From Mantamonas sphyraenae STR306 (Eukaryota > Protista > CRuMs), in assembly GCA_026936335.1 (NCBI GenBank), contig JAPMXV010000039.1:1-64000 (forward strand): a stretch of 64,000 nt of DNA. Direction: 5' to 3'. Under the pieces are notes generated by a model. It was not told the origin of the DNA, did no database searches, and saw only the letters and a list, made by a program, of their open reading frames with translations. Below are positions 10,874 to 40,186 of the stretch, piece after piece (positions within the stretch are counted from its first letter, which is position 1; each line of letters begins with the position of its first letter). A program made the position numbers and the translations under genes.

Positions 10874-12520
10874 TCACTCCTTGATGGAAAAATCGATGCC
10901 CTGGGCAAGAGGCAGGCTCTTGCTGTAGTTCACCGTGCACGTCGAACGGCGCACATACTGCTTCCAGCTGTCAGAGCCAGCCTCACGGCCCCAACCGGTC
11001 TCCTTGTTGCCGCCAAACGCTCCGCCGATCTCGGCTCCGCTTGTCGGGATGTTCACGTTCACGATGCCGCAATCGCTACCCAGCGCGCCTGTCCACTTCC
11101 AGATCTTTGCCTGGTCCTGAGTAAACAGCGACGACGACAGGCCCTGTGCCACTTCGTTGTTCCACTCGATCGCCTCGTCCAGATCGCTAAACTTCATCAC
11201 GTACAGGATCGGCACAAACGACTCCTCCTGCACAATCTCCATGTCGTGCGTCGCTTCCACAATCGTGGCCTCCACAAAGTTGCCCTCGCCCTCCACGACC
11301 TTGCCGCCCGCAAGGATCTTGCCACCCTGCTCAACGGCTGCCTTGATCGTGTTCTCAAAGATCTCCACGCTTCGCTTGCTGTGCACAGGTCCCAACAGCA
11401 CGCCCTCTTCCATCGGGTCTCCCATTTTCAGCTTGCCGTAGCCTGCCACAAGGTTCTCCAGGAACGAGTCGTAGATGCTTTCGTGCAGCATCAGACGGCG
11501 GATCGATGTGCATCGCTGTCCAGCTGTGCCCACTGCGCCAAACAGAATCGCTCCAAACGCAAGCTCCAAGTCTGCGTCGTCCATCACCACCACCGCGTTG
11601 TTTCCGCCCAGCTCCAGCAGCGTGCGCCCAAAGCGGCCGTTCACCACAGAGCTCACGTGGCGACCCACCTTGGTCGATCCCGTGAACGAGATCAGAGGCA
11701 AACGCTTGTCCTGGATCATCGCCTCGCCCACAGTCTGTCCCGGGCCGTTCAGGCACGTAAACACCGCCGGGTTGATCTTGTTTGCCACAAGCACCTCGGT
11801 GATGATCTTCGTCACCGCAATCGTCACCAGCGGCGTCGTCTCGCTGCCCTTCCATACCACGCAGTTGCCTGTGATCATGGCCAGGCACGTGTTCCAACCC
11901 AGCACTGCCACGGGAAAGTTGAATGCAGTGATGCAGCCCAGCACTCCCAGAGGGTTCCACATCTCCAGGATCACGTGGCCCGGTCGCTCAGACGGAATCA
12001 CGCTGCCTGCAAACATGCGCGACAGGCCCACCGCGTAGTCGCACATGTCGATAAACTCCTGCACTTCGCCCACGCCTTCCGCCTCAATCTTGCCCACCTG
12101 CAGCGACACCAGCTTGCCCAGATCCGACAGCTTCTCACGCAGGGCCTCTCCAATTTGGCGCACCACCTCGCCACGGCGCGGCGCAGGCATCTGTGTCGTG
12201 CATACCCGTGCAACGTGTCCTCTCTGCTTGTCAGCACAAATTCCGTTCTTCCATGCACCGCAAAAAAAACGGGCAAACCCTCTCGCCACGCCACTTACGC
12301 TTGCCCAGTCGGGCCAGGCCGCACGTGCTGCCTCCACCACTGTCTCGTACTCTTCCACCGTGCTCTCCGTCACCTTGCCCACAAGCTGGCCCGTGGCAGG
12401 GTACGTCAGCTCCACCGTTTCTCCGTTGCCCGTCCACTCTGTGCCGTTCCACGTGCCCAGGTTTGTCTCCTCCAGGCCCAAGCGCTCCAGAAAATCGTAG
12501 GTCTTGTCACTGCTGCTCAT
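10874..12520 (-). CDS. ALDH7A1: Aldehyde dehydrogenase family 7 (antiquitin); intron 12191-12298
   Basis: PAPRRGEVVRQIG, ITAFNFPVAV, FTGSTKVG, LLELGGNNA, GTAGQRCT, GAEIGGAFGG.KETG.GRE.GSDSWKQY, LPLAQGI. Confidence 0.96.
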   Translation of the reverse strand: MSSSDKTYDFLERLGLEETNLGTWNGTEWTGNGETVELTYPATGQLVGKVTESTVEEYETVVEAARAAWPDWASVSGVARGFARFFCGAWKNGICADKQRGHVARVCTTQMPAPRRGEVVRQIGEALREKLSDLGKLVSLQVGKIEAEGVGEVQEFIDMCDYAVGLSRMFAGSVIPSERPGHVILEMWNPLGVLGCITAFNFPVAVLGWNTCLAMITGNCVVWKGSETTPLVTIAVTKIITEVLVANKINPAVFTCLNGPGQTVGEAMIQDKRLPLISFTGSTKVGRHVSSVVNGRFGRTLLELGGNNAVVVMDDADLELAFGAILFGAVGTAGQRCTSIRRLMLHESIYDSFLENLVAGYGKLKMGDPMEEGVLLGPVHSKRSVEIFENTIKAAVEQGGKILAGGKVVEGEGNFVEATIVEATHDMEIVQEESFVPILYVMKFSDLDEAIEWNNEVAQGLSSSLFTQDQAKIWKWTGALGSDCGIVNVNIPTSGAEIGGAFGGNKETGWGREAGSDSWKQYVRRSTCTVNYSKSLPLAQGIDFSIKE

Positions 12521-12612
12521 AGTCAAAAATGCAAAGTGTTGATTGAAAAAACTCTTTGTTTGCGTGGCTCCCTGGCCGCCGCTCCGCTCCGCTGCACACA
12601 ACAAGAAGCACG

Positions 12613-15231
12613 TCAAACCTTCCCATTGGCTTCTTTCTCCTTGGGCATGCATCGCAGGCCGTTCCTCAGGTCACCCATCCCGTTCTCCGGGCCAATCCAG
12701 CACATGGCCGACAGGAAGAAGCACATCGACCACGCCAGCGACAGCGAAATCGTCGACATGATCAGCACCGCAAACTTGGTGAAGAACGTAATGGTGCAGC
12801 CCCACAGGAACAACGACGATCCAAACGTCGTCATGGCTCCCGCAAGCACACTCACTCCCATATCCGTCACCGCGTCGCGCATCTTGTTGAATCGCAGCGC
12901 ACTTTCGCTTTCCATGTACGAGTTGCCCAGATGCACAACGTAGTCCACAGAAAATCCAATAAGAATCACCGCACTGATGCTCTCTGTCACGCCCAGCTGC
13001 CATCCCAGCAGCACCATCACTGCCAGCGTGCTCGACACAATGCCCACAATGGTCAGCGTCGCCAGACCGCCCACAATCCAGTTCGATGTGCTTACAATCA
13101 GCACCGCAAACGCCACGCTGATCGAAATCGCCATGCCCTGCACAGCATTCGTCACAAAGCTCTGTTGCGTCTCAGACCAGCCCCACTCGAAGCCCGACGT
13201 CTGGAACGCGTTGTTGACCCCCTTCGGGCTCGCTGCGTTCCGCTCATTCGCAAACTTTTCAAACTTGGCCCGCTCCGGCAGCACGTCCAGGTAAGGCTGG
13301 AACGGACGCAGATTCGCCGTCATTTCCATGCGCATAAACTTCAGCTCCCCTTTCACAAAACCAAGGTGGCGGTTCAGCAGGTACTTGCGGTACGTCGTGT
13401 TGGTGGTAAACGCAAGCAACGACTGCGTAAACATCTTCTTTTGGTCCGCTGCGTTGTCGCTAAAGTTCACAGGGAACTGCTTGTACGTGTCCAGCGCCCA
13501 CAGGCGGTAGTCTTCCATAAAGCATGTCACCAGCCCCTTGCGAACAAACTCCTTCCCAGCCGCAGATGTGCACGTGTCCAACACAGCTTGCTGGTTCGCT
13601 CGCGGGCTCGCGTCAAACTCGCTGTCAAACACAAGCTTGCCAATGTCGTCTGGATCGTACGGGTCTGTGCCCGAGCGGTCAATCGACTTCAGGCCCCACA
13701 CCATGCGCACCTTCACAGCGCTGTCTTCGTCTGACTGCAGGAATCCGTCGCGCAGCGCACGCTGAGCCTCGCCAAACGGATACCCACGCGGAAACCACTC
13801 CTCCTGGTTCGTCAGCGGCGCCAGCTGCGCCGCGATAACCACGCCTGCAACAAGCAGCAGGCCAAACAACACCACAAGCGGCACATGAAATCGCTTCACA
13901 AAGTCCGACCACTGGTGGTAGAAGAACTTTTCCACAGGACGCAGCCCGTCCAGGTTGCGGGTCTCAGTGTGCGCCGCCTCGGCTGCTGCCCGCGCTGCCT
14001 TCTTTGCCGCGCGTCGTGCCTTGCGAGCTGCACGCCGCTCCTTCATGCTCTTGCGCCCACGCTTCAGATCCTTCATCTCCACCGACTCGCTCCCGCCCGT
14101 CTCCGCCGCCTCCGGTTTCGTCTCGCCCTCCTCCGCCCCCTCGTCGTCCTCCTCCGATGACAACGATGCTTCACTCTCTTCGTCGCTTTCAGACTCCGAC
14201 TCCAGGATCTTCTTGCCGTCGAGTACCTCCACCATGTCGTTGTTCTCCGGGTGCACCTGGATCGTCTCGTTGCCGCTTGTCTTGGCGTGCGGCTTGCCTG
14301 CCTCTCCGGCCTCCACGTCCGCCTCCTCCTTCGCCTCCTTGCAGCGGAACACATAGCTCGACACACGTCCCTCGCGGAAGTTCTTGTGGTGTTCAATCAC
14401 AACCGCAGGGTAAAACGTCACCACCATCCAGTAGTTGCCAATCACAAGGAACGCGGCAAAGAAGCCAAACGTTGCGATCGGCATGATCACGCTCGTGCCC
14501 GTCGCCAGGAACGCCGCCATTGTCGTGAAACTTGTCACAAACATGGCTTTCGCCGCACGATGGAAAGCCCAGTGCATGCGCTTCTCCAGGTCGTTTGCAA
14601 GCTCCTCGTACAAACCGCCCTGCAGCCACGCGTCATAAAGCACAAAGATGTTGTCTGCACCGATGCCCAGAATGATAAAGATGGCCAAGCCGTGCAGCGC
14701 CTGGAAGAAACTGATCCCAAGCACCAATCGGTAGATCGAGTAGCTGTACGCGAACGACATCAGAATCTGAAACATGCCAAAGCTTGCCAGGAAAGCGCTG
14801 CGCGTGTGCACGCCGATGTAGAACAGCACAAACACAATCGAGCCAATCGCAAACGAAAAGTCACGGTCCGTCAGCGTCTGGAACTCCAGTTGGTTCAGCC
14901 GTCCGCCGTAGATGTACACGTGCATGTCCTTGTACTGCGCGTTGTCCAGCACATCGTTGCGCAGCTTCGTTGCGTACGGGTCGTACAAGGCCCGTTGTTC
15001 CGTCGGGCGATCATCCTTGTTCTTGTACTTCTTGCCGTCCTTCACCAGCGGTGCGCCGTAGAAGAACCCTGCGCGCGTGAACTGAGACTTGCGCGAGTCC
15101 TGCGTAAAGTTGCGTGCAAAGAAAAACTCGCTAAACAGCTCCAGGTTCTGCGTGCTGCCCAAGCTCTTTACCACGTCGTCTGGGTTGCTCACCAACGAGC
15201 CCTTGCCGGTCGGCATGCTCACGTTGTTGAT

Positions 15232-15266
<35 letters not shown>

Positions 15267-16146
15267 TCAGCCTGCGCACCGCTCGCACACACACGCACAC
15301 ACTTGCCCTCTACTTCCTTCCCCGTCCCACAACCTACCGTCTCCGGGTAAAAGTACGGAACCGAACTGAGGTACGACAGTTGTGCCGAGCAGTCCGTCGT
15401 CTTCCCATCCGTCAGACAGAACTTCTTGCGGTCCGCATCGTCCTTCAATTTCTGTATACGTGTGCCACGTGCCATGTTCTCGGGTTAGCATACGCAAAAA
15501 GCATCTCCTCCCCGCCCGCCGCCGTTTCGGAGGTTTCGACTGGAAGCCGTTCCGCCCAACCCACAAACCAACCCCCACCAGCCCCCCTTTTTCTTTTTGT
15601 TTCCCTCCCTCTCGTCCACACACCCACTTACGTCTTCCCATTTCTTCATGTGCGCAATACGCTCGCGTGTAAATACTGTTTGCGACGTGTCGTGCGTCGC
15701 ATAGATCAACTGTGCCCACCCGGTGTCAGTGGGAAAATTCCTTGGAGTGTCCCGTCCACATTCCTTCGCCCAACCCTCTTTCTTCCGCCTACCATAATCG
15801 TCCATGCATTCATCCGCTCCGATCGCTCCGGTTCATCCTTGTCCGTGTCCTCGTCCGTCAGCGACACCGATTCCAGTGCACGGATCTCCATGTCGTCTCG
15901 CTGCGAGTTGATATCGTCGCGAATGCGAAAGTCCCGACCCGTCTGCGGAGAAAACTCAAACAGGTTGAATCCCACAATGATGCCCCCCAGGATCAGCGGC
16001 AACATGAATCCCACAGCCATCACCACGCGATGGTGGCGTACAATAAAAACGGGGAACGACGGCCACGTCGACGGCTTCCAGCAGAAGGAATCCTCGGGTG
16101 CCGGTTCGTTCCACTCCTTGGCTTCGGCGACTTCGTGTTCTGCCAT
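12613..16146 (-). CDS. Dispatched/Patched-family RND (sterol-sensing/MMPL) transporter; three introns between ~15230 and ~15790
   Basis: 12-TM pattern, FIILGIGADNIFV, LIGFSVDYVVHL and AMFVTSFTTMAAF typical of DISP-like proteins. Confidence 0.88.
15235..15262. repeat. (CA)n microsatellite inside an intron
   Basis: About 14 CA units next to the 3' splice site of the Dispatched-like gene. Confidence 0.9.
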
Positions 16147-18544: not shown

Positions 18545-21500
18545 TCAACTCCTCCCCCACCGCCGCTTCACCTTCCCCTTCCCCTTTCCTCCTCTGTCAT
18601 CCCACTTGTTCTCCTCGTGCACTCCCTGTGCCGCCATCGCAACGCTCTTCCGTTTCTGCGCTCTCTGCCGCACAATCGTTGTCACTGCCGTCAATCGGTC
18701 CAGGTATCTGTGGATGGGCCGCCACACCGCTTCGTCTAGCACCAGATCTCCGGACGTCTCATAGTATGTGCTCGCCTCAAAGTATCGATGGCTGCGCAGC
18801 ACCCATGACACCACGATCGCAATCAGCTTGCTCGACATTTCCAGACGAGGTACCATGACTCCGAGGTTCTCCACCGCCCGCGCCGTCACTTGTGCCAACG
18901 TATTCGAAATCACTCGGTGCTCTGCACTTTCCAGTACCATTGCCTTTGCAATACTGCTGTGCAGCTTGTCGATCGAAAACGGCTCCACCGGCTGGCTCGG
19001 GTTGCGCTTGCGCACGTAAAACGTGCTTGGTGTCGCGCTTGTTGGCGGTAGACCCCGTCCTCGGAAGCGAGTCAGTGCACGACGCCATGCCCCAAAGCCT
19101 CGGTCGTTCCGCGCTGCCAGTGCCTCCGCATCCAGCTCCTCAAACGCCCCATAGAAACGCTTCAGCCTTCCTTGCTGCCACCTGCGAAACAGAAACAACT
19201 CGGCGATCCGCCCGGCCGCCACCTCACGCACGCACACTGCCTGGAGCAGCTTTACATGCTGTTTTCGCTCCTCAAACGGCAACGCGTCCATACCCACTAG
19301 CCGCAGGTACAGCTGACGCAGCACAACCTCGTGCGAAATCATAGGCTCCACTTTTCCCTGCCGTCCCGGCCCCAGGAAGCTGTGGCCCACCACGTTCAGA
19401 TACAACGACCGAAACCATCCATCCGGTGCCTCATTCTCACGCGGGTGACCCAGCGGCGGGGGGAGCCGACGCACAAAGTCTTGCAGCAACCGCAACGGCA
19501 TCTCTGGGGGCACTTCCTTCAGGAACACACCCTCTGGGTGCCATCGCCTCGCAAATGAGATCCAGTGCGAGTGAAACTCCACAAAGTTGGCACTCGTCAG
19601 CTTTGTGTCGTACACAAAGCTGAACCGCTGCAGCACAACTGCCACCAGCAGATTCAGAAAGATGTACGCGCTAATGCTACGCAGAAACACAACCAACCCC
19701 ACTGCTATCTGCCGCTGCCCGCAGTCTGTTGCTCCGTACCCAAACTCTCCCGCCGCCGCCGCCGTGCAGTACGGTTCCGTCAGCGACAGGTCTGCCATCA
19801 GCACGCTCCAGTTTTCGCCCGTCAGTGTGCCAAACAGCGTCAGCATCGCTATGCTTGTCGATCCAAAGTTGCTGTACTTGTCCAAGTACAACCCTTTCTT
19901 GGTTGTGCCAAACACCTGCACAAACACAATCGCAAACGTGTACATCAGCAGCAGAAACACCCACGTCAGCGAAAACACTGTGATGAACGAGTGCCGAAAC
20001 GTCACCAGAATCGTCTGCAGATTCGGCACCCGGTATGCCAGACGCACAAACACAAGGAATCGAAACTCTTTGCTTGGACGAAACGACGGCAACAGCGTGC
20101 CACCTCGCCCGCTTGCCTCGATCGACTCAAACAGCAGGCCCCCGACCACGGCCACAAACTCAAACACGTTCCACGCATTCCTCAGATAATTACGCGGACC
20201 ACTGGCGATCATCTTCAGCACCAAGTCGATCGTATAAAGCACGCTGATTGTGTAGTTTGTCCAGAACAGCGCTGTCTCCATCCATGCCCTCATGCCAAAG
20301 TGGAACGTGCACATCACCACCACATGGAAGCACAACAGCGCCAGCACGCCTGTTTCCCAGTTTCCATGCACCTTGTGCATCCATCGATCCCGATGCCGAT
20401 GTACTCGGTAGCTCGTTGGCATCACCCGTTGGCCCGAACGTCGCTTCCGCTTGCCTCCCTTGCTCCTCTGCATCTCTTTCCCATCGTCCTCTTGGTCCCC
20501 TGTCGTCGTACCGTCCCCTGTAACAATCATAGGTGCAACTCGCCGATCACTGCGCCGCCTCTGACGTGCCTCTCCTGCACTTTGTGTGCGCGCTCGCTGC
20601 CGCTGGGCCATGCACGCACTTTCACTCAGGTGACACGGCACCACAAGGCTGTAGCACACCCCTCGCACCGATTCCAGTTCCCGAGGAACACGTACAAGCC
20701 AGTTGCTAAACGTCGATCCCATAATCGATTGGATGGCACGCCAGTTTCGCTGCTTGCTCGTCAGCCACCCGATGTCTTTGCGGTCGTAGTACAGGTCCAC
20801 AACCACACCCACAAACAGTTGCACCACAAAGAACGCCCCCAACACAACCACTATCACCACAAACAGCGCGTTCAGCGGCGTGGCGCGGTCCTTTGGCTGC
20901 AGCCCCACATCTCGGACGTCCATCAACTGGAACATCAGGTAGATCATGTTGTCTGTCGACGCAAGCTCAAATACATACCGACACGCCTCCAGTACGTCGT
21001 CAAACGTTTGCTCGGGCGAGTACCACGCGCGCGGCACCAGGATCCCCTGGCTGTTCACAAACGTGCCAACACACTCTGCCACCCCGTTCACACTCGTGTC
21101 TGTGCACTCGTCCAGCTTTCCTGCATACAGAGCCACCCCGATGCACGCCGCTGTGTACCCAAACACAATCGCAAACAGCATTACGTTGAAAATGCCCGGG
21201 AGCGACTGCACAAATGGGCCCACCTGGCTCTGCAGGTCGTGCGACCGAGGCACAAACAGGTACGCCAGCAGGATCACCCGAATCACGCTCACGACATATC
21301 CGGCTGGCGACTCTCTGCCCAGCGCAAACGAGAGCACCTGCACCAATACAAACAGCACGTCCACAATCTTCCACCACCGCCGAAGAAACGCAATGGTTCC
21401 GTGGTGGTGGTGGTGGTGCCGTCCTCCATGAACCCTCAGCGGTCCAGCACGCACCACAAGCCGTTCCGCCTTGGAGTGGCCCTTGATCTCGCCCGTGCTC

Positions 21501-24500
21501 ACTCCAATCCACATCCCCTCCGCACGCCCTTGCTCCTCCACCATCGAATCCTCCTCGTGCGACGACACAGAGCCAGCTAGACTCCCGGTGCCTCGTGACG
21601 AGTCCGACACCTCGCTGATGCGAGACAAACTTCCCTGCTTCTGTTTCGTTCGAGCGCGCAGCTCGTTCAACCGACGATTTGCATTCGGCACAAGCGAATC
21701 CGCCATGGCCAGCATATGCTGTTCCTCTGCGTCGTTGTTCTTCCCGTCTCCTTGCGGAACTCCCTCTTTCTCCTCCTGCGTCATTGTCGTCAGCGCCACC
21801 TCGGCTCGAACATTCTGGCGCGACACTTGTCTCTCCAGCCACTGCAGCATCGCCTTGTACACGCTTCCTCGCGCGTTGTACACCAGACCATGTGTAATGA
21901 CCTCCAATCCCACGTCCACAAGCACCCACACGAAAAACAGCGCCTCGCATGTTACGTAGTACTCGTTTGTGCCGTCCCAACCCACCTGCGCGGGACGAAA
22001 CACGCTCTCATGCACCGTGTACACCGCAATGAGCAACATTTGCCCCCAAAAGTACACCACATTGTACACCACCGACGCACACCACATGCGCACGTTGCTG
22101 TCCAGCCCGAACACTCCCAACGAGTTGTTGGTCACTGTGCGGATCAGCACGTGCTCTCCCCACCACTCCTTTACGCTCCCCACCATGTCGCGCCATTGTT
22201 CCACCAGCTTGTTAACCCACATCGGTCCGTCCAGGTGGATGTTGTACTCGTCCGGATTCTCCACATCGGCGCCCGCCATCAGATTCAACGCCATCTCGCT
22301 CGTCTGCCGGTCACTTTCAATGATCTCCCTCACCTCTTGTGATTGTTCGGTGGACATTTCCCCGCTCAGCACAACCTGGCGCAATCGTGCCAGACGCTTC
22401 TGCAGATACTCCTTCTTCTGCAGCACGTTCTTTTCGTAGTCCGATTCGTCCAGGTCCCCCAGCACCGCGGCCACAATCATGTTCAAAATCACATACTTCA
22501 TGAACGTCATGAACGCTGTGATGAACACACCCATCGTGAACGCCCGACTTGTCCGCAAGCCGTCAAACAGCAGCGTTTGCCAGTCATCCCCCGCCATCAA
22601 CACAAACAGCGTCAACAGCGTGTCTGGAAACGTGTCATAGTTCAACCTCTGTGTGTTTTCCACCCCATCCAGCAAGCCGCGGAAGGTCAGGTTGGCAAAC
22701 AGCGCCGACGTGGCCAGAATCATAAAGATGAGCCAGAACAGATCGCGGAAACTGCGCAGCATCTTCACCAATTGGCCAAGGAACACACGAGTTGGCTCGT
22801 ACACAAACAGTACGCGCACCACGCGTCCAATCGACACGATGTTCAGCACCTCTGCGACCTGTTGGATCGCTGCCGACTCGCCGTCCAAAAGAAACAGCAC
22901 CAGATTCGGAATGCCCAACATGACCAACACAAAGTCCACACGATGTCGAGGCAGCCTGAAGTATGATGTTGCGCCCAGGCCATAGATCATCAACACCACC
23001 TCGCCCAGAAAAACAAGTGTGAACACTTGATCCAGAACCACAAGGACCTCTCGCGTCTCACTGCTCATCCCCTTGCGACGCAGCCCAAAGATAAATGCGT
23101 TGCCGATGATCAACACCGTCACAATCAGCTTCCACGTGGCCGAGTTGACCACACTCCTCACGCGCATCCTCGCCGGGCTCAGTTCTTCCTCCTCCTCCTC
23201 CTCTTCCACCAGCATGTCCACAAGGCTGATAATCCCTGCCTTTTGCTTCTTCTCAGCCGCCAATACCCGCTGCCTTGCTTCTTTACGCCGCCGCCTCTCC
23301 ATGGCCGCGGCCCCGGCCGCCGAAGAAGACCCGATCGAAACACTCGTGTCCAACTCCACGTCGTGTCCTTCCCTTTCGTTGAGCGCTTGGATGCGCACCT
23401 CGTTCTCCATCAGCTTCTTGACACCATTCACGATTCCGTGCAACGACGACCTGCGCTTCTGTTTCTTCGGTGTATCGGTTGAAGCGCCTGCGAGATGCAT
23501 GTCCTCGTTCATCATCTTGTCCGCGGGCGAATCGGTCCCTTTGAGGTTGTTGTGTGCCTGTGTACGCATGCGCGTGCGATTGATGGCCACCTGCTCGAGC
23601 AGGTGTTGGCTCGTGCCTGCGCCTGAGGAGCTGGTGGACAGAGACATGCTTAGCGTGCCATGGTCCGCGACCAGGGATCCTCCGCTGCCAACCCAGGTGT
23701 CCGACGACATGAAAGAGCCTCTGTGAAGGCGCCGCAGCATATTGCTGTGTTTCAGTGCCTCTCTGAGCGTGCGCTCCAGATCATCCCGCGCACGCGCTGC
23801 CTCACGCATTTCTCCCAAACCCAGTCCAAAGTTGTTGCCCAGCAACAACGAGCGAGCACGTGCCCACAGTTGCCTTCCGCTCCTTTCTGTGCCGCTCGAC
23901 ACAAACGGATCCAAGCGCGACCGTGCTTCGCTGTAGTTCTCAGCCAGGCCTGCAATCACCAGACTGAGTGCCAGGAAGCTGATGATGATGATTAACGCCA
24001 CAAAAAAGATGAAGGAGAAATTAAACTCGCTCTCTCGCAACGGGTGCATCAAGCCAAGCCAGCCCTCTTGGGTCACACCTTGGAACACGGCCATCAGAGC
24101 GGTGCCCACGTGATCGAACGAGTTGAACCCATAGTTTGGGTTCTCGCCCTGGACACACACCTGACCCGTGTTGCACTGGTGTCCAAAGTTCTTTCCCCCC
24201 GAACAATACGCGGTTGGAATGACGGGCAGGCCGGTCGCCTCCCACACACATGTGCGCCTCAGCGAGCCTGTGAAAGCATACAAGCCGTAGCTTGCAAACA
24301 TGACCATGAGAAAGAGAAGCAAAAGACCTGTGCGCAAGAGACTGCGCGATGCGTTGACCAAGGCATGCGACATGTTCTGAAGTGTAGCAACGAGCTTGTT
24401 CGCCCGTTGCCACGAATCCGGGAAAGGCCTGCGCATGCGCAGGATGCGAAACGGTCGCAAAGCACTCAATGGGAGCATCAGGACACGAAACACCAGGAGG

Positions 24501-25691
24501 TAGTCGCACGCAATCAGAATGAGACGCCAGGTAAACCATGGCTGCAGGATCACCTGCACTTTGTACACAATAATGAAGAGCAGGGCGTCGAGAGTAAATA
24601 CAATAGCCCAGACCAACAACAACGCCTCCTGCCACTTCATGCCACCTGTGTAATAGCTGGGGGGATCCAGCGCGAAGAAGGAAAGGGAGAGGATGTGCAA
24701 CAACATCCACCACACGACGCTGCGATTGTACAGGTTGCGTCCACTGCGACACAAAGGGTAAGAGGTGGTCAAGCGCCCGTTGTAGTGTGATTGTGAGCAT
24801 GTGCACATTCCACAGCGCAACACATGGGGACATGGGCAGGACGAAAAATGCGGGCAGTGGCGAGACACGCGAGTGCCTGCCACGCTGTTGCAAAGGCCGG
24901 ACGGCAAGGCGGTGCACAAATTCGCAATCCAAGGAAAGGCAAGCATACCGTGGGTCAAGCCATTGGCTAAGTTTCCAGCGCAGGGAACCGTCAGGGAGGG
25001 GCAGGCGCTGGCCGTCGTATTCAAGGGGCTCGGGCTTCTCCTCCTCGGCCACGTCGCTGTTGACCAGCTGTTCCATCACCGACACAGAATGAGACACGTT
25101 GGCAATGCGTTTGGCCGCTTTGCGGATATTTGCTCGGAATTCGGAGGGCGTCATGCGTCCCGCGTGCTGCTGGCCTTCCGATGTTGACGCGGCTTCTGCC
25201 AAAGGCACAGGCCGAGTGTGCGCCTCGACCATCCGTGCCGCCTTGTCCTTGCGCTTGACTCTCTCCGAAGCTTCGGCTCCTGGCTTCCTCAACGGGGTCA
25301 GAGTGGGCACCTCTGGCATGTGTGAAGGACTGTGGCCTGCATTATGGTCGCTGCCGCCGCCGCTGCTGCTGCTGCTGCTGCTAGCCGGTGACCCGATCTC
25401 GGCCGTTGCCGCGCGTGCTTCGTCCTGGCGACCGCTGTTCTCCGGCACGTCCGGGTGCTGTGCTTGAGCAGCCACCTGCGGTAAGTCCAGAGAGGCCCTG
25501 GGGCCGCTGTCTGCATCTGCATGCGAGCGCTGCGGTGAGAGCACAGGTAAACTGCCGCGGGAAGTTGGCAACGGCAAGGCGGGCAACCGCTTGTCGCCTT
25601 GTGCGTTGTTCTCCTTTGGCCCTTGCCCCGTTCCTGACTGCACTTTGGGCAGCTCCTTAATCGGAGGCAATTTGCGCGAGTCTGAGCTCAT
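18545..25691 (-). CDS. Four-domain voltage-gated-like cation channel (NALCN/Cch1-like, ~2,313 aa) with putative C-terminal ATP-cone domain; intron 24744-24948
   Basis: Four 6-TM repeats with pore loops FQGVTQEGW, FVLMAGDDW, FELASTDNM and FGTLTGENW; GENPNYGFNSFD in DI; S6 motifs such as IFLNLLVAVVLQRF. The intron restores the frame between ORFs 24021-25691 and 18545-25024. Confidence 0.92.
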
Positions 25692-25744: not shown

Positions 25745-28700
25745 ATGTCGCGGCCACTGCGCTTGAGTCAACTGCGCAGCACGCCAGGCAGTGCCCAGAG
25801 GAAGAACCGATCACCAATGCGCTCTGGATCTGCTTCGGACGCAGAGACAGAGGAGCTACTTGTTCGTATCCACCGGGAAAACACAGCGCGCAAGGCGCTC
25901 TTGTCGAAGCGGCGACGACAGCGCACCTACGAGTCGGACAACACCAACCTGTCCCACAGCATGGGTTCCGACAGCCACTATGGCCGTGTGGGAACGTCCA
26001 GCCGCTCCTCCCTGCGCATGGGTGCGTACGGGAGCAGCAGCGGACGCGTGACGGCGCCGCAGCTGCGGTCGACCCCATCGCGCTCCGACAGCCGTAGGGC
26101 GTGGGAAAGCAATGCCGCTCACGGTACACCCTCGCATGGCGTGGCCAGCAGCAGCAGCAGTCGTTCAGAAGAGAGTTTGGATGTGAGCAATGACGAGAAC
26201 GATCGCAGCAGGCACGACGACGACTTGCACGAAGCAGGTGACTTGGAAGACGCGCCCAGCTTCAACGTGTCTGCGCAACGCAGCACCCTGGAAATGTAGG
26301 TTTGCACGGATACATTGCACACACGCCTCCATACAGCATGGAACATGTGCTCGTACACTCCTCCGCCGCCCGGGTGGGGACACCGCTACGACCAGCTCGG
26401 GTTGCGGAGGAGCGCGGGAAATTTGTGTGTGCCAGGCTGCCAACGGATTTCTGACATTGCACCTCCTCGTCCATTTCACCTGGCCCCCCTTCACAGAGAC
26501 ACACTGCGCGAGCAAACAGAATTGCAGGCCAGTGTCAACATGCTTACCAAAGAGCTGGAGAAGCAAGAGAGAAGCATGGTGCTTGTGCGAGAGGAGCACG
26601 AGGCGGAGCTGGAGAAGAAAGGAGCGCGGCTGCAGGCGGCGCAGGAGAAAGCAGACATTGCACAGGAACGGCTGGCCAGTGCACGCACAGATCTCGATGC
26701 CAGTCAGCAACAAGCACGCAAGTGGGAGCAGACCGCACAGGAGCTGCAGAAGCAACTGGACAATGCAAGCCTGGAGAGCGAAAATCGCACGCGCGAATGG
26801 CAACGCGAACGAGCATCGCTGTCTGCAGAACATGTGCGCCTGGAAACCGAGGTGGCCTCGTTGCAACGACGTCTGGCCAACGCACAGACCGAGCGCCAAG
26901 AGAGCAAGCAGGCGTGCAACATTGTGTTTGAGCGTCTGCACCAAACACGCCAAACCCTCGCAGACAAAGCGGCCCATGTGGATGTGTCTGTGCTCACCGA
27001 CCGTCGCCTTGTGTCTGCCACGCAGGCCAAGGACTACATTGACAACATGATGCATGCCGTGGTTGCTGCCAACCACAGGCTGCACACAGACGCCCAGGAG
27101 GCTGCGCTGGAGCTGGAGCAGCAACAGCGTGCACACGCACAACTGCAGGAACACCATGCCCAGCTCAAGGAGCAACTGAACAAAGCATACACCATGGTCG
27201 ACGGCCTGCAGAAACGCATGCAACAGATGGAAACGCAGAACAGCGCAAGCACAGTGGCCTTGACAAGCACCCAGGAGGTGGTCGAGGCCAAGCTGGCCAA
27301 GTGCCAGAGCGAGCTGCTGCAAAGAGAGCAGGAAGTTGACGAGCTCACGCAAGCCAATGCCATCACCACAAAGAAGAACATTCACCTCATGCGCCTGATT
27401 GAAGAGACGCAGCTCAAGTACAACACAGAGGTGAAGCGCCATCGCGTCACAGCAGACTCACTACAAGCCACACGCGAAGAGCTCTCTGAAACAGAATCTC
27501 GCTTCAAACACACCCTCGACGGTGCAGAGACCTCACTCAGTCAGCGTGAGAGCATGCTGGACAAACTGCAGAAGGAACTGGGACAGTGCCACGCTCGCCA
27601 AGAACGCTTGCGCGAAACCAACAAGAGTCTGGCCGAGCAAATTGAGCAGCTCAAGGGAGAAGCTCGCGAGACGGAGGCTCACCACAACGTGGCACATGCC
27701 GAATGGCAACGCAAGTTGCACGATGCCAAGGAGACTGCTAGCCGTCTCAGCATCAAGAATGCGCGCATTGAAAGCGAGTATGCATCATGCAAGGAGGCGC
27801 TGCACAAAGCCAATGCACAGGTCACCACTCTGCAGGAGAATGCAGAAACATTGCGTGTGCAAATGCGCTCCGAACGCAACCGCAGCAGCACTGGCGAACG
27901 GATGCGCAAGGCCGAGGAGAGCAAGCGAGAACGAGAGCTGGAATCCCTTCAAAAAGCCCTCGCCAAGGCCCAAGCAGAAGCAAAGGAGGCTTCACAAGCG
28001 GTGGCTGAGTACAAAGAAGAAAACATGGATCTGCGTGTGCGCATCAGCTCGCTGAGCAAGAGCGCATCCAGCGAAGAGTCGTCGCAGCGGCAACGGACAG
28101 GAGAGTTGAAAGCCCTGCACGAACGCCTGCAGCAGGAAGCAACCAAGCGTCAGACTCTGGAGTCCACCCTCAAGACGACCTCGGGGCAGCTCAACGCAAC
28201 CGAGCGACAGGTATTGGAGCTCAAGGCACAGGTGCGCAAGGAGCGCTCCAATGCCGATGCAAACGCAGCCAACCTACACGTGAGCAACGAACAAGTGGAA
28301 AGCCTGCGACGAGAACTGGAAAAAGTACGCCAGCACATGGCAGACACGCGACGGGAGTGCTCAGCAAAGGTGAACGAGGCACGCGAGACACAACTGCGCG
28401 TGGAAGAGGCAAAATCGCAATCCGAATTGGTGGCAGAAAAGGCTCAGCAGCGAGCCATCCGAGCCAACGAACGGATTGGTACCTTGGAAGCACAAATCAA
28501 AGAATTGCAGGAGCAGGTTGAAGACCAGCGCGCAGAGAACAAAGTGCAGGAACAGGAAAAGATGAGCTTAGTGCAGAAGCACAACCAACGTATGAGCCAG
28601 GTCCGTGCAAGCAATCAGGAGCTTGAAGAAACAGTGGAGCGACTGCAATCGCAGCTGGCGAGCATGCGCGACAAGGAGAACGAGATATTGGTGGCACTCC

Positions 28701-37700: not shown

Positions 37701-40186
37701 AGCTGCGCGCGGCTTCACGAGAAGAACACGTTGTGTGGGCAGCCATGATCCAAGAGGCACACGAAGGAGCAGTTGCAGCACGCGTGGAAATCCGCAAGCT
37801 TCAGGAGGAACTGGCGTTGTGTCGTGTGCGCGAAACCCTGTGTGAACAGGAGACCTCTGAGAAACACAAAGGGGAACAGCTGTGGAAGAAAGACGCAGAT
37901 ACGTGGCGCACATGGGCAGGCGAGCTGGAACAGTGCGTCGCCGCGCAGGCGCAAGAGAGGGCGAGCGTTGGCTCCGCGAGGAAAGAGGTGTTGAAACAAG
38001 GCCTTGTCAACGCGCTGGAAGCAGAGGTGAAGAAGCAACAGGAACAAATTGCGGCGTTGCAGCGGCAGTATGACGAACAGCAAACGGCGCTGCAGCGAGC
38101 GGAAAAGGAACGAACAGCGTGCGAAAGCGAAGCAGAGGACCTGCGGGCGAAGCTGGCCAGCAAACAGCTGCAATCGCGTATGTTGAGGCGCAGTTCGGTG
38201 TCTCTGAGCGACGAAGGACTTCTGTCCCCAAGATCAGTCAAGAGCGAGGAAGAGCAGGAGGCGGAACGGCAGCGGCGCAAGTCTGCGCAAGAGGCACGTG
38301 TGACCAGTGCAGCTGGCCAGCACGAAAGCTCATCCACGGGAGCTCAAGTGGGATCGCACATGCAATTGACCAACGCTGAGGAGATGCGGGACAAGGAAGA
38401 ACTCGAAACGAGGCTGAGTAGCAAGAAGCCCGCGCGACCCCGCAGCGGTAGTGCGTTTATGCGTGTGGAAGCAGATGGGGACGGCGAAAATGGCCAGAAG
38501 GAGGAGCCGGAGGAGCGGTCACGAGCGTCGTCGAGCGCAGAAGGCAGTCATCCGGCCGCATTGTTGTCTGTGGACGACGGAGGAAATCGGGAACGATCCA
38601 ACTCGGATCTTGGAGCAGTGAAGCGTCGACGAGGATCGTTTGACAAGCGACACTTGTTCCGCAAGGCCGTAAGGCAACACGCGGAGGAAAAGGCGCACGG
38701 GGAGGAAGAGGTGGTGAGTGGATCGGAGAACAGGCGTGTGGAGGAGCGAGCGGTGAGACGGAGCGTGGCACAGGTGTACACAGCGTCTGTGGTGGAAGAG
38801 GCATTGTGGAATCAGGTGCGTGAGCTGAAAGAAAGCCGCGTGCTGGAGAGTGCGCTGGACAGGAAGCACGTGTGGGAAGAGTTTGAGAGGGATGACGAGG
38901 ACAAGGTGGCAGACATGGAGGTGGTGTTGGGAGAGCTTCACTACGGGTCGGTGAACCGAATTGTGGAGTTTGTGACGTGTGATGGTCGAGAAGGGCAGGT
39001 TGCTGTGATGCTTGTGGCGTTGCGAGATGTGCTGAAGCCATGCGAGCTACTGCTGAAGCTAGCTCAGCGATGTCAAGTGCCCGAAGAGAACGACGTGGCG
39101 GTGCAGGAAGCCATCCAGGGCCATGTGGTTCATGCGTTGCGCCAGTGGTTCCATGCATATCCAGATGACTTTGATGAGTCTCTGCGTGCCAGTGCGGTGT
39201 CCCTGCTGACAAGTCTATCTGATCGCGTGCCAGGACGCGACGAGATGACTGAAGAATTCAACGCCATCCGGAAGGGGGAGAGCGGCGTCTCGGAGAATGG
39301 CACTGTGTCAACTGTGGCCTCCTCTTCCTCGTCATCCTCTTCAACGTCATCGACAGATGATACAAGTGGTGTGCAGGTGCAAGCGCCCGAACCAATTGTT
39401 CCCAAGAATGTGTTCTCGCCATCTCTGGTGTGGGAGGATGTGGACGAAGTGGAGCTGGCGCGGCAAATCACCTTGGACGACTGGGAGGTGTACTCGAGCA
39501 TCAAGGAGACAGAACTGCAGAAGCAGGCGTGGAGCAAAGAGAAGTATCGACACCTTGCACCGAATGTCCTACTCATGACATCGCGCAGCAACGGGCTGAG
39601 CGCGTGGGTGGAACATATGGTGCTGCAGGAGGAATCGCTGAAGGACCGCAGTGCGCGTCTGTCCAAGATTTTGCGTCTGCTGGAGAGTTTCTTGGATCTG
39701 CACAACTACCATGCGGCGATGGCAGTGCATGCAGGATTGACGAGTCAGGCTGTGGACCGCCTGAAACACACCAAGAGCGAGCTGAAAAAGCACGACAACA
39801 AAGTGCTTGCGCGCAGTGCAGAGTTGTGCCATCCGAACAAGAACTTCAAGGCATTCCGAGAAGCGCTCAACGAGTCGTTGGAGGCCGGCGTGGCAGTGAT
39901 GCCGTTCCTGGGCTTTCTGCTGACGGATCTGACATTTATTGAAGATGGAAACGCAGACACGCGGGATGGACTGATCAACTTTCGCAAGAAGAGCATGGTG
40001 CACGGGATTGTAGCGCTGGTAGCTCGCAGTCAACGTGTGCCGTTTGTGTTTGTGCGCGTGCCTCAAATCAGCAAATTGGTGGAGCTCGAACGACTGCTGG
40101 AAGTGTGTGTGCTGGACGAAGACGCCAAGTACGAGGTGAGCCTGCGTTTGGAGCCTCGTGGATCAGACAAGGGATCGCTGGCGTGA
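25745..40186 (+). CDS. Giant (~4,746 aa) coiled-coil protein with C-terminal RasGEF (REM + CDC25) domain; intron 26296-26496
   Basis: More than 3,800 aa of E/Q/K/R/L heptads. REM-like region (GSVNRIVEFV..VVHALRQWFHAYPDDF) and CDC25 region (VELARQITL, LHNYHAAMAVHAGL, PFLGFLLTDLTFIEDGN, LINFRK). Confidence 0.88.

Follow-up and report, generated by a model that had tools for sequence, protein, structure and literature searches.

A gene on the minus strand of the window (the 64,000-nucleotide stretch of the Mantamonas sphyraenae STR306 genome analyzed here, contig JAPMXV010000039.1) is predicted to encode a four-domain cation channel whose C-terminal tail contains, very probably, a divergent homolog of the ATP-cone. 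This is a new domain architecture made from two known parts. The hallmark of the ATP-cone is the binding of ATP or dATP together with a change of oligomeric contacts, and research on it has been confined almost entirely to nucleotide metabolism, namely to ribonucleotide reductases (RNRs) and NrdR. If the assignment holds, no other membrane channel with an ATP-cone would be known to us, nor any other ATP-cone in eukaryotes apart from that of ribonucleotide reductase.

The channel frame is free of stops over 2159 aa (ORF 18545–25024, minus strand), and residues are numbered here according to this ORF. The segment that the earlier note had assigned to an ATP-cone (18761–19021, minus strand) corresponds to aa 2002–2088, in frame with the channel, and its translation was reproduced exactly. 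Inspection of splice signals identified one well-formed intron in the channel gene, of 205 nt, and joining of the two predicted exons (Table 1) gave a stop-free product of 2313 aa. The length and stops of this product were counted by script, which is all that the join was checked for; the predicted protein was searched exon by exon. Pfam searches returned no match for the product of exon 1 and none for the basic terminal tail.

Table 1. Predicted features of the channel gene (positions are those of the window)
Feature	Positions	Strand	Basis
Predicted exon 1, ATG at 25691, ~247-aa low-complexity N-terminus	24949..25691	-	ORF 24021-25691; donor at 24948
Predicted intron, 205 nt, GTATGC donor, GCTCAC branch, CAG acceptor	24744..24948	-	sequence signals
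Predicted exon 2: four channel repeats, C-tail and ATP-cone-like domain, to TGA	18545..24743	-	ORF, Pfam, splice signals
Repeat I; filter E320; regular Arg series in S4	23915..24721	-	Pfam, alignment
Repeat II; filter D813; S4 helix with just two Arg	22448..23137	-	Pfam, alignment
Repeat III, part C-terminal to a large insertion; filter D1358; single Arg in S4	20783..21394	-	Pfam, alignment
Repeat IV; filter E1737; S4 partly degenerate	19607..20362	-	Pfam, alignment
Proximal C-tail (very diverged EF-hand/pre-IQ/IQ-equivalent region) and ~37-aa linker	19022..19606	-	weak Cav/Nav-tail match
ATP-cone-like domain, aa 2002-2091: beta-hairpin (2-residue insertion) and four helices	18752..19021	-	profiles; alignment-guided model
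Nucleotide-site signature V2004, K2006, R2007, E2014, F2016, K2020	18965..19015	-	column conservation
Post-cone 30-residue helix, kept in M. plastica; candidate dimerization/coupling helix	18644..18733	-	alignment, model
Basic low-complexity terminal tail	18548..18643	-	sequence

The earlier identification of a four-domain cation channel was borne out. Pfam recognizes four Ion_trans repeats with P-loops in one chain (383 bits), and the ORF aligns with Cav1.2 with an E-value of 1.5e-84. Four repeats, P-loops, and a lysine-free acidic filter are features that the Mantamonas channel shares with its nearest known four-domain counterparts; its database matches among Cav, Nav, NALCN, and Cch1 proteins are 21–31% identical to it. 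The selectivity filter reads E-D-D-E and is neither the EEEE nor the EEDD of Cav (HVA/LVA). All four residues are acidic, so that Ca2+ permeation is plausible; Ca2+ as the permeant ion, proposed in the earlier note, is deduced from these filter residues. In Cav and Nav, the S4 segments of all four repeats are rich in Arg and Lys, whereas repeats II and III of the Mantamonas channel are charge-poor; most of the other channel repeats sampled in M. sphyraenae keep 5–8 charges over the same interval of S4. Charge-poor S4 segments are also found in NALCN and Cch and in certain channels of protists, and are a mark of voltage-insensitive four-domain channels (PMC5824947). A tree of repeat IV grouped the channel with Cch1 (92/90) and not with NALCN, a join flagged as a long-branch one. 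Large insertions in which no well-formed intron signals were seen lie in the III–IV linker (20369–20719, minus strand) and in repeat III (21401–21919, minus strand), the latter including a poly-His run; neither matched a Pfam family. Beyond repeat IV, the phmmer alignments to Nav and Cav extend to about aa 1860, and the proximal C-tail resembles Cav/Nav tails weakly, with 3.5 bits at a pre-IQ-like stretch. The degenerate IQ-like helix that had been placed after the DIV S6 gave no statistical signal against Cav/Nav tail profiles.

The tail had been described as continuous with the channel, and the gene model agrees with this. All nine introns read by eye in the M. sphyraenae genome have GTA.GY or GTGAGT donors, and the inspected introns with a visible 3' end have a branch of the CTRAC/CTCAC type; beyond aa 1444 the ORF is stop-free and no donor of this type was found. 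The opposite case, that the cell does not make the fusion, would take one of two forms: either the cone belongs to a small gene of its own that assembly indels or splicing have attached to the channel, or an in-frame intron (weak donor at 19231/19237, acceptor at 18992) takes out the IQ-like region together with the K-R hairpin. We regard this as improbable. Synonymous codon usage supports the ORF frame in both halves of the cone and is ambiguous across the 37-aa linker, where the channel frame scores -0.18 vs +0.01 for the frame in which the ATG at 19088 lies; yet scores this low also occur in other disordered loops of the channel gene, and the N-terminal half of the cone has the highest codon-usage score of the tail (0.38). 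Position 19182 has a pyrimidine-rich AG and position 19076 a branch-like ACTGAC, which could be read as splice signals, and the fragment from Mantamonas plastica described below opens with unrelated sequence. On the other hand, two separate genes would require two compensating events, the cone frame contains no ATG from the IQ-like region to M2029, and the assembly is based on PacBio reads, Illumina-polished, at >100x (PMC10492846). A 54-nt in-frame intron at 19235–19182 was also considered and rejected (weak donor, no branch site); the fusion would stay intact even if it were spliced.

The assignment of the tail to the ATP-cones rests on several partly independent tests, which uphold the resemblance pointed out in the earlier note; the agreement with its pattern is incomplete in that other residues stand in place of the DG in the KRDG turn. 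The Pfam ATP-cone family (PF03477) is the top match of the isolated segment (23.5 bits, E = 8e-5, aa 2003–2084). The score does not reach the gathering cut-off of 25.8 bits, and the segment is therefore classed as a divergent homolog and not as a threshold member. Scanning of the whole M. sphyraenae genome (25,061,354 bases, 78 contigs) with PF03477 gave two matches, the RNR R1 and the channel tail (22.1 bits). A profile built without the query, from 80 ATP-cones taken from the genomes of bacteria and archaea and from the host RNR, gave the segment 14.3 bits, a score attained by none of 2000 shuffles, and no domain in the 228,000 compared residues, drawn from other channels and from decoy frames, did better. 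The hhalign score of the segment against the cones was 28.8, with a null maximum of 14.9. Two further comparisons were set aside: one had the query in both profiles and was circular, and the other used a strict motif pattern composed with the query in view. The two halves of the cone, with boundaries chosen by us, were also scored separately. The N-terminal half (the first 30 residues) alone reached 19.5 bits vs a shuffle maximum of 5.7; the C-terminal half alone was below significance in local HMM mode and gave z = 4.6 in end-to-end alignment (0 of 400 natural decoys).

A chance or convergent resemblance, in which an unrelated helical tail domain happens to display the V-x-K-R...E-x-F...K pattern, appears improbable in light of these results, since the two halves score independently with the right spacing and the tail is the sole non-RNR match to PF03477 in the genome. 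The low identity to any cone (at most about 25%) and the sub-threshold Pfam score would be expected of such a resemblance, as would the value of 0.87 for the ESM feature neighbors of the segment, which is below 0.9; these neighbors fall in ATP-cone clusters and provide a lead only. A blind single-sequence search of 301 archaeal genomes was nevertheless enriched for cones, which made up 6 of its 20 weak matches, including the top two, and no other family emerged when the ATP-cone clusters were excluded. The segment had no match in PDB sequences, NCBIfam, PHROGs, or plasmids, and no relevant match in viral and metagenome scans. Two other hits were discarded: a tail-region hypothetical protein of a Rhizobium phage (E = 9e-3), which is not a cone and was matched by chance, and a repeat-containing fish RhoGAP, which was spurious.

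Structure prediction gave different results depending on the input. AlphaFold2 produced no cone from the single sequence (pLDDT 54), an uninformative outcome that would also suit a chance resemblance. With the cone alignment as input, the pLDDT rose to 88, and the model consisted of a hairpin, four helices, and the extra 30-residue helix. This model superposed on NrdR (7P37; Z = 12.4, rmsd 1.8 over 87 residues) and on NrdD (9D3X; Z = 13.2), matches that are circular because the cone alignment imposed the fold. The modeling thus indicates compatibility of the segment with the ATP-cone fold and no more.

The N-terminal ligand signature of ATP-cones, V-x-K-[RK]...E-x-F-x3-K, is present in the segment, and its six residues (Table 1) occupy columns that are 62–95% conserved in the 80-cone profile. 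Their equivalents in Streptomyces coelicolor NrdR are V48, K50, R51, E56, F58, and K62, the start of the 7P37 alignment placing V2004 on V48. Substitution of V48, K50, E56, or K62 in that protein impairs nucleotide binding (PMC9110341; PMC12176259). In the last helix, no Arg or Lys is conserved between the two Mantamonas sequences, and the Arg/aromatic set of the outer site in two-nucleotide cones (RFASVY or Y-I-L-Y-R) is absent. These missing residues are the ones that serve the second nucleotide and the discrimination between ATP and dATP in NrdR/NrdD-type cones. We infer that the Mantamonas cone would have at most one adenine-nucleotide site, the inner one.

The cones of NrdR are among the closest known counterparts. 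NrdR of S. coelicolor (7P37) and of E. coli (9FVR/9FZF) has the V-x-K-R...E-x-F-x3-K signature in common with the segment, helix 3 starts much as in E. coli NrdR (EMSSKLIAIVV vs EVPSKMIGNLV), and in both proteins the cone lies C-terminal to the effector domain and is followed by a further helix. The two differ in that NrdR has a Zn ribbon partner, whereas the Mantamonas cone resides on a eukaryotic channel; the identity is about 20–25%, the hairpin of the Mantamonas cone has a two-residue insertion, and F124, V127, and Y128 of the NrdR outer site (the RFASVY motif) are missing. The cones of RNRs (NrdA/RRM1, NrdB, and NrdD/NrdJ types) share the same N-terminal ligand signature and, according to the model, the topology, and the start of the last Mantamonas helix resembles the G-[FH]-x-[DE]-x-A turn of the NrdD type. 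RNR cones are, however, N-terminal, while the Mantamonas cone is C-terminal and without the YILYR arginines. Small stand-alone ATP-cone proteins of 112–118 aa, with the last helix truncated, were observed in Archaea of the Woesearchaeota-containing phylum.

HMMER searches of 1.84 billion representative sequences found one real homolog of the tail, a 129-aa ORF in a transcript of M. plastica that is 50% identical over aa 2032–2127, namely the second half of the cone and the next helix. The identity points to selection on helices 2–4 and the post-cone helix, and, since the ORF comes from a transcript, a relative transcribes this region. The fragment aligned end to end with the profile of the C-terminal cone half at z = 4.1. 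Its first ~20 residues are unrelated, and it contains neither the K-R/E/K motif nor any part of a channel; the 50% identity consequently bears on neither the binding motif nor the link to the channel. The unrelated residues are perhaps derived from a retained intron, and the fragment has no contig on record. Word-based homolog searches found no full-length ortholog, a result that carries little weight because the same searches overlooked the M. plastica fragment. In a tree of cones, the segment was placed among those of NrdR, with a very long branch of 5.4 changes per column. A sister grouping with the cone of the host RRM1 was rejected (p-AU 0.009, with a long-branch caveat), and an origin from NrdD/NrdJ-type cones was not (p-AU 0.16). 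An old acquisition of a prokaryote-type cone is plausible.

We tentatively propose that the Mantamonas channel binds one adenine nucleotide through its C-terminal ATP-cone homolog and is modulated by it. In this proposal, Mg-ATP or ADP (or dATP) would be seated in the inner site beneath the hairpin roof, and its occupancy would shift the last helices in an NrdR-like manner. The shift may alter cone–cone or cone–tail contacts via the conserved post-cone helix, and the change could be passed through the proximal C-tail to the S6 gate of repeat IV or could control channel clustering. With weakened voltage sensors, the nucleotide status would help to set the open probability and hence the entry of Ca2+. 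The outer site, which discriminates dATP, looks lost, so that the energy charge (ATP/ADP) is a likelier signal than dNTP pools, and sensing or modulation by ATP/ADP suits the sequence more than sensing of dNTPs or gating by the nucleotide as the sole trigger. A stronger version, in which much of the voltage sensing has been traded for direct gating by ATP, ADP, or dATP through a cone of probably prokaryotic (NrdR/NrdD-type) ancestry, seems doubtful to us.

It is also possible that the domain is a true descendant of ATP-cones that acts not as a gating sensor but as a structural or interaction module for dimerization, clustering, trafficking, or docking, perhaps with a constitutively bound nucleotide. 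The very long branch, the last helix without basic and aromatic residues, and the conservation in M. plastica of helices 2–4 and the extra helix would all suit such a module, and cellular ATP at mM levels would saturate a site of sub-micromolar affinity (NrdR Kd values, PMC12176259). Degenerate, non-binding cones do exist as the second cones of RNRs; the ligand residues vary in them (PMC9669993), whereas these residues are the best-kept part of the Mantamonas cone and the place where its signal peaks. The retention of the inner-site residues favors binding, and we keep modulation by a bound nucleotide as the preferred reading.

Several channels possess cytoplasmic nucleotide modules, such as NUDT9-H of TRPM2, the CBS pairs of CLC, and the CNBD of CNG and HCN, and KATP channels also belong here. 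These channels are alike in principle to the Mantamonas channel as proposed above, having a C-terminal cytoplasmic nucleotide-binding module coupled to the pore, and differ in the fold and in the channel class. We know of no four-domain channel with a built-in nucleotide module. The earlier statement that no ATP-cone is known on Cav, Nav, NALCN, or Cch1 channels is in line with the finding that none of 53 channel matches carried PF03477, and no report joining ATP-cones with channels was found in a literature search of incomplete coverage. An ATP-cone on an ion channel would carry the module into membrane excitability and would provide four-domain channels with a built-in sensor of metabolism, comparable to those in TRPM2, CLC, or CNG. 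Mantamonas is a deep-branching marine protist whose lineage lies close to the base of Amorphea, and the architecture therefore bears on how ligand control was grafted onto voltage-gated scaffolds. A test would be cheap, as the domain is soluble, measures 130 aa, and has ligand residues that can be predicted, and the protein may offer a natural model for the engineering of channels that sense nucleotides.

The M. sphyraenae genome contains 92 Ion_trans matches, which makes it rich in channels for a flagellate with 25 Mb of DNA. Among them are at least five more four-domain channels, whose S4 segments are intact and whose filters are acidic, as well as several two-repeat channels; the tails of these paralogs were examined by genome-wide profile scans and through their flanking sequence. 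Within the window, the start of the channel gene (25691, minus strand) lies head-to-head with a plus-strand ATG at 25745, with ~53 bp between them, which suggests a tiny bidirectional promoter. The plus-strand neighbor is a very large gene with an ORF of 4623 aa that ends at 40186. On the other side, a gene for a MINDY deubiquitinase (Pfam PF04424; 16237–18373, minus strand), with at least three short introns, begins ~170 bp beyond the stop of the channel. The second gene downstream of the channel (12613–16146, minus strand) encodes a Patched/Dispatched-like sterol-sensing membrane protein, which was recognized by eye. An aldehyde dehydrogenase-like ORF (10874–12652, minus strand) holds a stop-free in-frame intron (GTAAGT...CAG), indicating that long ORFs in M. 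sphyraenae can conceal introns.
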